From Klebsormidium nitens (lineage: Eukaryota > Plantae > Klebsormidiophyceae), in assembly GCA_000708835.1 (NCBI GenBank), contig DF237050.1, forward strand, positions 57,919 to 121,918: a stretch of DNA of 64,000 nucleotides, written 5' to 3'. The position numbers and the translations under genes were made by a program. The notes beneath the pieces are model-generated. The model worked only from the letters and a program-made list of their open reading frames with translations. It did not search any database and was not told where the DNA came from. This document shows, in pieces, positions 7,069-62,200 of this stretch (the first letter of the stretch is position 1; the number at the start of each line of letters is the position of its first letter).

Positions 7069-8350
7069 GGTTTGGCAAAACCTCTCAGCATAGAGAAACA
7101 ACTTTTTCAGGTAATAGTGAAGAGCACACGCACACCTTTTAAATGCTTGGGCAAAGAATGTTTCCCTGACTTAACTGGATAGAGTGTGGGCAGCATTTGA
7201 GTACAGACGCCTCCAACCAAATTTGCTGCTGAGGCGATTATCAGAGGACTGGTGCCAGTTGAGAATGGAGCATGTACCAGACCTAAGGGCAAATAGAAAG
7301 GCTCTGTGAAGCACACGAACTAGTCTTCATGTTGCTTCATGTGGCGGGACAACTTTTTAGTCCAGATATTTGCACAGCCAAATAAGAAGATCTTTTCCTG
7401 GATCATTCCTAAACAGCCGAGAGAGAAATACCCCAACCTCATCAACTGAGCCTTAATGTGATGCTGGCCGTCACTTCAACGAAGATCCACATAAGTTTGT
7501 AATGCACATATTGACGCTCTCAGGTTGTTGGTGTTTCCAATTGAGCAACCATGCCAAAAGTTAAGTGCACAGACCTGGTTGGTCAGTCTGACTGGATTCC
7601 TCTACTTGAGTCCGCGGACCAGCGCTTGTTGCAGTTCCTCCTGCGAGAATCATCTTGCACATTATGATGAAGTCCAATTCACACAGAATTGATGGAAACT
7701 CCACCTATGTCAGCTTCTGATTACACGAGTAGCTGCAGGCTGCGCTGAATATCCAGCATCTATGAAGGCCAGCGACCGCCTGCAAAACCGAAGCCACCGT
7801 CCGTAGCCAAATGGAACTGGAATTCAGACCATTGCTCCTGTCCAAAAGTTCTATATTACGATTTTGCACATGAATCTACTTCTTGCACGACCTCCTCTTC
7901 TATCAGAAAGTTCAAGCTAACTCATGCCAAATAGCGAGCAAAGCTAGATCAGGAAATGTAGAATCCAAAGTGGTCAACATTTGCAACTCACCCTGCGTTG
8001 ATGCAGCCGTCTGTTCTTCAATTCTCCCCTGTGTGGAAGCTTCTTCCCCTGCCATCTCTGACTTTTCTCCTCCCGGGTGAGCCATTGGCACAGTTTGCAG
8101 CTGCAAATGATGATTTTTTCAAGTTGCTCCTTCTCAGATGACTTGCGCTCTTCTAGATTGCAGCTCACGTTCGGAGGTGATGGTCACAATGTGTCAACAC
8201 AAAGCAGGGCGCTGCAGCATCTGTGCCTTCGCTTCCAAAGCAACTTCCTTCTTCTGAAGTCTGCTCAGACTGCTGCATTGGACACCAGTTCTGCGCTCCA
8301 AGCAAGCGGCGCCAGGGTTTCCCACAGCCGGCAGCTACACTTGGACCTGG

Positions 8351-59200: not shown

Positions 59201-62200
59201 TGCTTTCCATGCTGAAAGAATGTCGACTACTGTAGTGGGATCATCGTGGATCTTTGACCTTATTTATTTGATTTGTGTTCTCAGGCGGATAACCTCCGAA
59301 GCACGAGTGATTGGAATGTCGCGCAGTCCAGACCGGAAAAATGTTATTTATGTTGCCCAGGTGAAAAATCGCCAAAGCATATTAAGTCATGGATAGTCGT
59401 GAAGGCCAGACCTGAGAAGTGGAAGTTGTGATGCTCAGGTGAACAATCTGAACAACCTGACGTCGGGCAAGGTGGTGGATGCGCTGCTCAACTACGAGAC
59501 GGTGGCGCAGTTCAACAACCAGGCGCTCGAGGAGAAGCAGTACGACAGCCTGCTCAAAGACTACCAGGACGCGTCGGTGAGCTCATCATTGCAGAAACGA
59601 TCTCTATCGCATCTCGCAGTTGGTTGCATAAACTTTGTCAGCGCAAGCATTCTCTAGAAACTCGGAGGAAAGTTCAAAATTTCACTGCACACGCCTCGGT
59701 TAAGATCCTGCGCCCCCCTTGGAGAAGTCTACTTTCTGGCTTTAGCGATTGCTTTCAATTTTCTTTTACACATGATGTTATCTGCTGTTTCATAGAAACA
59801 ATGATGAGCAATCTTGAAGGAGGTGCCCCGAGGATTTGTTACTTGAAAAGCCCGTCACGGCACGTTTGCTGTAGCTGTACCTCCGTGCTTGCCGCCAGAT
59901 CAATAGAACAGGAACTGATCCTCTTCCACCTTCCGGCGCTCGCATCTCTCAGAAGTGTGACTCTTTTCTCTCGCTCTGCAGATCAATCTGGAGTATCTCT
60001 CAGCGTCTCTCAACAGCGGTCAGGCGCTCATCCTCGCAACCGGGGTGTCGGCCATCATGGCCATGGCGGGGACAGGTGTCATCCAGGGGCGCATGACAGT
60101 TGGCGACCTCGTACTGGCCAATGGCCTCATCTTGCAGCTGTCGGTGCCGCTCCAGGTGCTGTTACGGTCATGCTTGGAGTTCGGAGACGCGTTCGTGACT
60201 TCTTTCACGAGAAGCTTGAATTCTCTCACTGTTTTGTCCGTTTGTTCTTTCATTAACCTAGTTGCCGGTATCCCCTGTCCCTGCATTCGGAAGGTTGTTA
60301 TCGAAAACCTGCCGGCGGGGCGCAGATCGTCGAGCTTCGTATTTTTACTGACCGCCCTTATTGCATGGAGCTACTGCTCGGCTTCACCGTCACGTCCTGC
60401 CGACTTTTCCTTTCGCCCACTTGGGTATTTTCTGCCCACGTTACGTACTTTTTCAATCCCGTCTGTGGTCCTGTCTTGCGTGCAGTTCCTCGGCTTCTTG
60501 TACCGCGAGCTGCGCACGTCCCTGGTAGACATGGAATCCATGTTCAACACACTTAGGTCAGTCCCTTAACCCACCCTGGTTAGCCCACTTATGCTCGCTT
60601 CTCTGCCCCTCTCTCTGCATGTGCCCAGAAAACCCTGAGCTATCTAAACAAAGACCTCGTCCCGGCGATGGCCGACCTCGAAGAGATCTTCAAGCACCTC
60701 GCGTACGTGCGCCGCCTCCTTATGGATCGGGGTTGCCATTCGCGAGGGTTTTTTGTCTCTTTTGGCGGAATTGTTGCACTGTTGTTTCAGTCGTTATTGC
60801 ATGTTCACAAACACTTTGAGCTCGATGTGAGATCGGGTCAGCAAAGCTCAACGGTCGGAGTATACACGAACCCGGTCTCAAATCTAGGAGCCTCCTATCT
60901 TGGTTTGTTCTGCAACTGGCATGAGCAATCAAGAGACCGCGTCACCAGCATAGTATCTTCAAAGCTTTGCCGCATTTCCTGTGTGCAGTCGGAAGTCTGC
61001 CCTTCCCGATGGCAGTCGCGAGCTGAAAAGGAGTCAAGAGGGCGCCTCCGTCACTGCAAAGGATCTCAAGTTTGGATACAGCGATGCACGCCAGGTGGGC
61101 CGTTTCGTTTCCTCTCTTGCCGCTCTTCTTGTTTAGTCCATAGTGTGGTTGAAAATCGTCCAGCCGAGCAAAGAATGTTACTCACAAGTGGTTGCTTGTC
61201 ACGTATTTCTGACAGGCTTTGGGTTCCGTTAACCGCCACTCCGATTCCGTAATACTTTTGCCGTTGCTTTTGGAACAAGACTGCTGCTTTCGCCACCCAC
61301 CTTTGACACAAAATCTTCATCAATATTGACAAGTTTTCCCCGGTCTTCGCAGGTGCTGAAAGGCGTCTCGTTCAGCATAAAGCCGGGCCAGAGTGTGGCC
61401 ATTGTGGGCCCGTCGGGGAGTGGCAAGTCGACGATTGTGCGGCTGCTGCTGCGGATGTACGACCCGCAGCACGGCAGCATGGCCATCGACGGCGTCGACG
61501 TGCGGGACCTCACGCAGGAGTCGCTGCGCAGCGCCGTCGCGGTCGTGCCGCAAGACACGGTGAGCTTTTAAGAAATGATTGCGGAAGGTTCGTCAGTGTG
61601 TTTTGTGAGATCAGACGTGCGTGAAGAAGCGGGAGATGGAGAAGGCGGGGGGGTTTGCGGTGGGCGGAACACAGTCCACTAGAAGGGTCCTCGAGAAGTC
61701 GGAGCGGGTCTCCAAAGGTCCTTTGAAAAACTGGCAGCTATGGTCGGACACAAGTTCAACAGTCTACTACAAATTGGCTGAAGCACAATCTTCCTTTCAT
61801 ACTCCTGAAGCTTCGATCCAAAAGGATCCGAAGCGTAGAAAAAACTTGGTGTCGTGGCTCAATCCTGATTCAAGAAGACCGCGCTTCGCACCCGAACCAC
61901 CCAGATGGCCAGGCCAACGTCACCCGCCCTCCGAGCATGGCCTCAGAAAGTGATATCTCAACATAAAACCCAAGCTCCCCCCGAGAATCATCACGTGTTC
62001 TGAAACCCAGCATGCTCGATGTGCCGCAGGTGCTGTTCAACGACACCATCTTCTACAATATCGCGTACGGTCGACCTACTGCCAGCAAGGATGACATCAT
62101 CACGGCCGCGAAGATGGCCAAGCTGCACGACGCGATCATGCGCATGCCGGACGGCTACGAGACGCTTGTCGGCGAGCGCGGTCTCAAGGTAAGGCCTCGC

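Follow-up and report, generated by a model that had tools for sequence, protein, structure and literature searches.

A strongly conserved twin of the exon for the TM6 hinge segment in the Klebsormidium ATM transporter gene: a candidate pair of either/or exons

Can one gene supply two versions of the segment at which a mitochondrial ATP-binding cassette (ABC) exporter binds glutathione? This question is raised by an ATM gene in a 64,000-nucleotide stretch of the Klebsormidium nitens genome (contig DF237050.1 of assembly GCA_000708835.1, positions 57,919 to 121,918 of the forward strand; hereafter the window). Exon 7 of this gene (71 nt; exon A, or 7a), which belongs to transmembrane helix 6 (TM6), is followed after a mini-intron of 72 nt by a second, exon-like block of 74 nt (exon B, or 7b). 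An earlier reading of the letters alone (the original prediction) had proposed that the two are spliced in a mutually exclusive manner. We consider it probable that A and B are mutually exclusive coding exons and that a tandem duplication of exon 7 (71 nt) within the Klebsormidium lineage gave rise to the pair. The gene, the relationship of the two exons, their conservation, and the alternatives to this reading are taken up in turn below.

By its exon model and domain content, the gene is an ATM1/ABCB7/ATM3-type mitochondrial ABC half transporter. The GT-AG exon model that we built by script (Table 1) translates exactly to a protein of 824 aa (P0156) that NCBI names "mitochondrial ABC transporter ATM [Klebsormidium nitens]". 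Pfam places one ABC_membrane domain, then one ABC_tran domain, on its exons, and the closest solved structures to its product are yeast Atm1, human ABCB7, Arabidopsis ATM3 and bacterial NaAtm1. Exon 1 encodes a long, poorly conserved N-terminal extension, and the ABC_membrane profile stops at the last residues of exon 6. The public annotation of the gene contains exon A only, and exon B is unannotated. The original prediction had also called the gene an ATM-type ABC transporter, which these results bear out; its coordinates, lengths, phases, splice dinucleotides and peptides were all exact, with the small correction that exon 8 ends at 61094.

The arrangement of the two exons imposes a simple frame rule. 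As the original prediction stated, either exon alone joins exon 6 to exon 8 in frame. Both run from phase 0 to phase 2, so that inclusion of A and B together leads to an in-frame TGA eight bases into B and inclusion of neither results in a frameshift. Exactly one of the two would therefore be carried by each productive mRNA, and only mRNAs with a single exon of the pair (A or B) encode an ATM protein. The exons are direct neighbors, differ in length by a multiple of three, share the same phase, and each have an AG acceptor and a GT donor; the same geometry holds in three related loci (L001, L007 and L015, described below).

Judged by its peptide, exon B is a diverged homologue of exon A. The two peptides align without an internal gap, B having one extra N-terminal residue, with 7/23 residues identical and a BLOSUM62 score of 36; the identity is low, at 30% for amino acids and 51% for nucleotides. 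We scored exon A against the 60,012 stop-free 23-mers in the six frames of the window (mean -22.6, standard deviation 9.8), and B had the top non-self score. The runner-up, at 7588, scored 33. This stretch of 23 residues, starting LTGFLYLSPRTS (window positions 7588-7656, plus strand), comes close to B in the pairwise scan and drops out when a family profile is used, so its resemblance to exon A is probably due to chance. With this profile, built from 181 distinct ATM segments of other organisms, B was again the best non-self match in the window (z about +5). The composition of B is also that of an exon: its GC content at third codon positions (GC3) is 0.79, that of the coding sequence (CDS) is 0.73 and intron GC is 0.485, and its codon-usage score lies above 96% of intron windows. 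Thus, both the gap-free alignment to A and the GC3-rich, exon-like character that had been attributed to B hold up.

To what extent has B been preserved in related genomes? Relatives were reached through protein-cluster representatives searched with exon 6, and comprise two different contigs of JGI sample 3300060284 (L001 and L015) and Logan assemblies of SRR14092358-60 (L007, L008 and L009). The four sequences compared below are K. nitens, L001, L007/L009 and L015. In L001, L007/L009 and L015, exon B has retained its reading frame and both of its splice sites (AG acceptor, GT donor). Between K. nitens and L001, only exons align and the long introns are unrecognizable, with the exception of positions 60481-60719, which align as one block at 85% identity. 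This block consists of exon A, the mini-intron, exon B and 17 nt beyond it. All exon borders are kept between the two, including the AG and GT of B, and B has no indel.

Silent (pS) and replacement (pN) differences per site were obtained for K. nitens and L001 by Nei-Gojobori counts, with the nine other gap-free exons of the gene as comparison. The latter gave a pS of 0.59, which corresponds to a silent divergence (dS) of about 1.2, and a pN of 0.069; the values were 0.19 and 0.071 for exon A and 0.21 and 0.077 for exon B. At this distance neutral sites are near saturation, and exon B is 89% identical; a Fisher test of its replacement sites against the gene-wide silent sites gave p = 7e-15. 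Three amino-acid changes separate the two versions of B (L/M, E/G and H/F), all at positions that vary in the family, and none affects the residues common to B and the family (L, L, D, E, F and L).

The closer relatives show the same pattern at shorter distance. L001 and L007 differ by 20-25% mismatches and many indels in the flanking introns and at 59/1387 positions of the other exons; the counts are 1/71 for exon A, 1/68 for the mini-intron and 0/74 for exon B. L015 has diverged from L001 by 14-20% across long alignments, yet its exon B is identical. Across L001, L007 and L015, exon B is thus 100% identical in the presence of introns that differ by 10-25%, and this excludes a decaying duplicate, the outcome that the original prediction had named for a block found to lack conservation. 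The alignments clearly indicate that strong purifying selection, and not decay, has shaped exon B within the Klebsormidium lineage; by the same comparison, B is older than the split between K. nitens and L001 (dS about 1.2). As a side observation, L001 and L015 represent the same ATM gene from one sample and share only 80-86% identity when exons and introns are counted jointly, so sample 3300060284 holds either two Klebsormidium-like genomes or two diverged copies.

Constraint in the block extends to sites that do not change the protein. Taken jointly, A and B have accumulated only a third of the silent divergence seen in the other exons (p = 2e-5). Between K. nitens and L001, for which no other intron of the gene can be aligned, the mini-intron shows 12 mismatches and one 4-nt indel. 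The four sequences agree in the 16 nt at its 5' end, which include CCTTAAC, in the 13 nt at its 3' end, and in the first 20 nt of exon B, which include the TGA. Regulated alternative exons typically combine low silent divergence with a conserved flanking intron. On these alignments, the combination of low silent divergence and a conserved mini-intron appears hard to explain if exon A were purely constitutive.

The segment encoded by this exon is well characterized in other organisms. ATM1, ABCB7 and AtATM3 (ABCB25) are mitochondrial glutathione-conjugate exporters with solved structures (4MYC/4MYH, 7VGF and 7N58; PMC9000953, PMC8694623, PMC9329353). In AtATM3, residues P432-R441 (PLNFLGSVYR) form the TM6 kink, at which the backbone opens for the binding of oxidized glutathione, and G437 and R441 are among the conserved residues of the glutathione pocket (Fan and Rees, PMC9000953). 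In yeast Atm1, Y396, R397 and D398 are located at the TM6 hinge, and D398 corresponds to the disease residue E433 of ABCB7 (Ellinghaus et al., PMC8694623). The border between exons 6 and 7 of the K. nitens gene splits this motif, the most conserved of the family: P-L-Q is encoded in exon 6 and F-L-G-F-L-Y-R-E in exon A, which corresponds to residues 293-315 of the yeast Atm1 construct. Because P-L-Q lies in exon 6 and the rest of the kink motif in exon A, the structural placement made at the outset, which assigned exon A to the stretch of TM6 lining the glutathione cavity, holds.

Isoform A carries the TM6 kink motif and has the domain order of ATM1, ABCB7 and AtATM3. The predicted isoform B differs from these transporters in that it lacks the motif and its invariant residues. 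Residues G3, Y6 and R7 of the exon A segment are invariant in 250/250 fetched homologues, and exon B has S, N and K in their place. B also has a proline where 229/250 homologues have Q, with one residue inserted after P-L-Q. The acidic and hydrophobic pattern of the helix connecting to the nucleotide-binding domain is retained (L, L, D, E, F, L). If B replaces A in some mRNAs, as we propose, isoform A would be the canonical ATM exporter, isoform B would have an exchanged second half of the kink motif together with an exchanged helix behind it, and the two isoforms may differ in substrate handling. ATM transporters are homodimeric, which would allow for A/A, B/B and A/B combinations. A more far-reaching version of this proposal is that one nuclear gene provides two ATM exporters (possibly including A/B heterodimers) whose glutathione pockets and TM6 hinges differ at family-invariant residues, and that splicing picks between canonical export linked to the assembly of iron-sulfur (Fe-S) proteins and a second substrate or gating mode. 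We regard this version as tentative and somewhat doubtful.

How might the choice between the two exons be enforced? Exclusivity would follow from the frame rule, perhaps aided by a mini-intron that is too short to be spliced out. At 72 nt (68 nt in the relatives), the mini-intron is 4 to 9 times shorter than the 11 annotated introns of the gene (258-678 nt); the main text of the Klebsormidium genome paper gives no intron statistics (PMC4052687). The branch-point-like CCTTAAC noted in the original prediction is present at the predicted position close to the donor of A, and a second branch-like motif is located nearer to the acceptor of B (Table 1). The remaining introns of the gene show no clear branch consensus that could serve for calibration. 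Steric branch-point exclusion between A and B would be a plausible mechanism. The arrangement resembles that of exons 2 and 3 of alpha-tropomyosin, in which exclusion is steric, in having a very short intron, a branch-like motif 12-13 nt from the upstream donor, and a long pyrimidine tract. It differs from alpha-tropomyosin in that a second branch candidate lies 37 nt from the acceptor and in that the frame rule alone would enforce exclusivity at the protein level.

The donors of both twin exons are atypical: A has a C at +3 (60557-60562) and B has a C at -1 (60700-60708), and the other 10 donors of the gene all have G at -1 and a purine at +3. These atypical donors would fit a regulated choice. 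By eye, U12-type signals are absent, since the donors (GTCAGT and GTACGT) do not have the U12 donor consensus and the acceptors are CAG; this speaks against exclusion through U2/U12 incompatibility. An antisense gene was considered as well and rejected, as the minus strand holds only short open frames that run into unconserved intron. With regard to exclusion by competing RNA structures (docking/selector type), the donor of B forms a helix with the 5' part of exon A in the RNAalifold model; the fold of the block as a whole was no better than that of shuffled sequences (z -0.43), without compensatory change. Rfam had no match in 60100-61100, so no known intronic small RNA explains the conservation. 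We also observed that positions 60498-60509 of the window (GTACCGCGAG) are complementary, with one bulge, to positions 60697-60708 (CTCGCGTAC), which form the end of exon B and its donor. This pairing is possible in the four sequences, the sole change (A to G in the donor) retaining a G-U pair, and is without statistical support.

Table 1. Positions of the ATM gene and of the features around its exon 7 pair, in coordinates of the window
Feature	Start	End	Strand	Description
ATM gene, CDS span	56282	63738	+	12 coding exons, 11 introns of 258-678 nt; ATM1/ABCB7/ATM3-type half transporter
Exon 6	59982	60155	+	TM6 through P-L-Q, first three residues of the PLNFLGSVYR kink motif
Exon A (7a)	60486	60556	+	71 nt, phase 0 to 2; acceptor GTGCAG, donor GTCAGT; canonical TM6 hinge/pocket segment
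Mini-intron between A and B	60557	60628	+	72 nt in K. nitens, 68 nt in relatives
Branch-point-like CCTTAAC	60564	60570	+	12-13 nt from donor of A, about 60 nt from acceptor of B; invariant in four sequences
Second branch-like motif	60588	60592	+	CTTAT here, CTCAC in relatives; 37 nt from acceptor of B, 35 nt from donor of A
Exon B (7b), candidate	60629	60702	+	74 nt, phase 0 to 2; pyrimidine tract and CCCAG acceptor, donor GTACGT
In-frame TGA if A and B are both included	60636	60638	+	within the first 20 nt of B, which are identical in the four sequences
Conserved intron flank directly 3' of donor of B	60703	60719	+	blastn block reaches 60719; alignments
Exon 8, common downstream exon	60989	61094	+	linker to nucleotide-binding domain; exon model

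Several observations weigh against A and B being an either/or pair at the protein level. Exon B has neither RNA nor annotation support. When exon B was compared with a set of 5.8 billion proteins (candidates of 122-388 aa only), no product containing B was found. A query of exon 6 plus exon A did not find a K. nitens fragment in the same set either, and the full-length ATM cluster of K. nitens has a single member, which is genome-derived; as there was no transcript-derived ATM fragment of K. nitens at all, the silence on B carries little weight. Scans of metagenome contigs for the junction of exon 6 to B and for the core of exon B (with degenerate codons) gave 0 matches each. The core pattern matches L001, yet the contig collection does not include L001, and both of these negatives are therefore void. 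All 272 fetched homologues have an A-type segment only and none has a B-like segment. The score of B itself against the family profile is negative, and exon B alone had no ABC match among solved structures. As part of a transporter, B would break residues that no member among the 250 has changed and would put a proline into the TM6 helix. Within the conserved block, the replacement sites of B are not significantly less diverged than the local silent and intronic sites (odds ratio 0.34, p = 0.08), so the constraint could be on RNA rather than on protein; exon A also gives p = 0.08 in this test, and the coding-specific signal is only a trend. Finally, a single deep comparison (K. nitens against the L001 group) informs the substitutions in B.

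There are three other ways to account for exon B. One is that B is an old duplicate that no longer codes and has been kept as an intronic RNA element, for example as an enhancer or a structure that tunes the recognition of exon A, without ever entering productive mRNA. Constraint on silent sites and on the mini-intron that is almost as strong as that on replacement sites points to RNA-level selection over the block and thus speaks for such an element, as do the departures of B from the invariant G, Y and R, the added proline, the missing RNA and annotation support, and the RNAalifold helix. The weak z score of that fold, its lack of compensatory change, and the empty Rfam search speak against it. 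Moreover, a non-coding element leaves unexplained why an AG with its pyrimidine tract, a GT, the phase and an indel-free frame have all been kept at dS about 1.2, and it does not sit well with an adjoining mini-intron that took a 4-nt indel where B took none, with pN and pS values that mirror those of coding exon A, or with amino-acid changes that are confined to family-variable positions. We consider this explanation unlikely.

B could also be a poison exon, in which case its inclusion together with A would lead to the TGA and to nonsense-mediated decay, so that splicing would set the level of ATM and not its sequence. Joint inclusion does give an immediate stop, the first 20 nt of B with this TGA are invariant in the four sequences, and conserved flanks are usual for regulated cassette exons. 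However, a poison exon of this kind requires splicing of an intron of 72/68 nt in a gene whose other 11 introns measure 258-678 nt, and both branch-like motifs are at most 36 nt from the donor. An open frame, the same phase as A and homology to A over its full length are not needed for such a role, which we hold to be improbable. The remaining explanation, that B is a neutrally decaying pseudo-exon or resembles A by chance, could draw on the fact that only 7/23 residues are identical and that an unrelated 23-mer scores nearly as high in the pairwise scan (33 vs 36). It is effectively excluded: B is the top match in two independent scans, adjoins A with matching phase and splice sites, and is 89% identical to L001 near neutral saturation.

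Mutually exclusive use of A and B is thus the reading that we prefer. Of the interpretation originally given to this locus, the gene type, the placement in TM6, the homology of the two exons and the conservation of B stood; use of B in mRNA, the steric mechanism, and different substrates or heterodimers are what we infer beyond them.

Is the second exon confined to Klebsormidium? In a moss-like contig (L003; peptide identical to Sphagnum P0168), a liverwort-like contig (L006; peptide identical to Riccia P0174), Closterium (L012) and Chara braunii (L014, BFEA01000368.1), the 71 nt of exon A likewise form an exon of their own, with unchanged borders. No B-like exon was found in the following intron or in the fetched locus of any of the four, 12 kb of the Chara locus being N. 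The absence of B from these loci makes it an invention of the Klebsormidium lineage, in which the tandem duplication of exon 7 would have given rise to A and B. Two further observations were made among these loci. In L002 (JGI 3300052651), which is moss-like, comparison with L003-L005 shows that the intron between exon 6 and exon A has been removed and the neighboring introns kept; this pattern suggests an incompletely spliced transcript from a metatranscriptome assembly. The annotated Chara ATM (P0007, at L014) has only 390 residues across 76 kb, and about 50 residues after its exon A segment are without counterpart in other ATMs; this gene model is probably incomplete or wrong.

Criteria for predicting mutually exclusive exons that derive from tandem exon duplication reportedly come from Pillmann, Hatje, Kollmar and colleagues; for human genes there is a survey of such exons (PMC5740500). 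Like exon pairs of that type, A and B are neighbors within one annotated intron, with lengths differing by a multiple of three, matching phase, splice sites, homology and conservation; unlike those pairs, they occur in a streptophyte alga and are known here from genomic sequence alone. To our knowledge, mutually exclusive exon pairs are rare in the green lineage. A documented precedent among ABC transporters is Drosophila MRP (CG6214), which has clusters of mutually exclusive exons encoding transmembrane parts that have been observed in RNA. MRP and the K. nitens gene have in common an ABC exporter architecture in which segments of the membrane domain are, or would be, swapped by either/or exons; MRP differs in being a full transporter of the ABCC type, in an animal, with many exon variants. 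We found no paper on an alternative TM6 exon or on either/or exons in ATM transporters, nor in Klebsormidium, and the literature on ABCB7 and "mutually exclusive exon" yielded only cryptic splicing in SF3B1-mutant cells.

The export substrate of ATM1/ABCB7/ATM3 is a long-standing question, and the TM6 kink motif is at the heart of the known glutathione site. Exon B is a natural second version of the kink segment that has remained nearly unchanged across algae whose silent sites are near saturation, and the A/B pair offers ready-made constructs for comparing pocket versions. Should B never be included in mRNA, it would still be of interest as an exon-derived element of an intron with unusual conservation. 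If A and B are indeed either/or exons, B would be an evolution-tested natural variant of a motif whose ligand is still debated, the pair would add a strongly conserved case to the short list of such exons in the green lineage, and the public annotation of K. nitens may miss an isoform of its mitochondrial ATM transporter.

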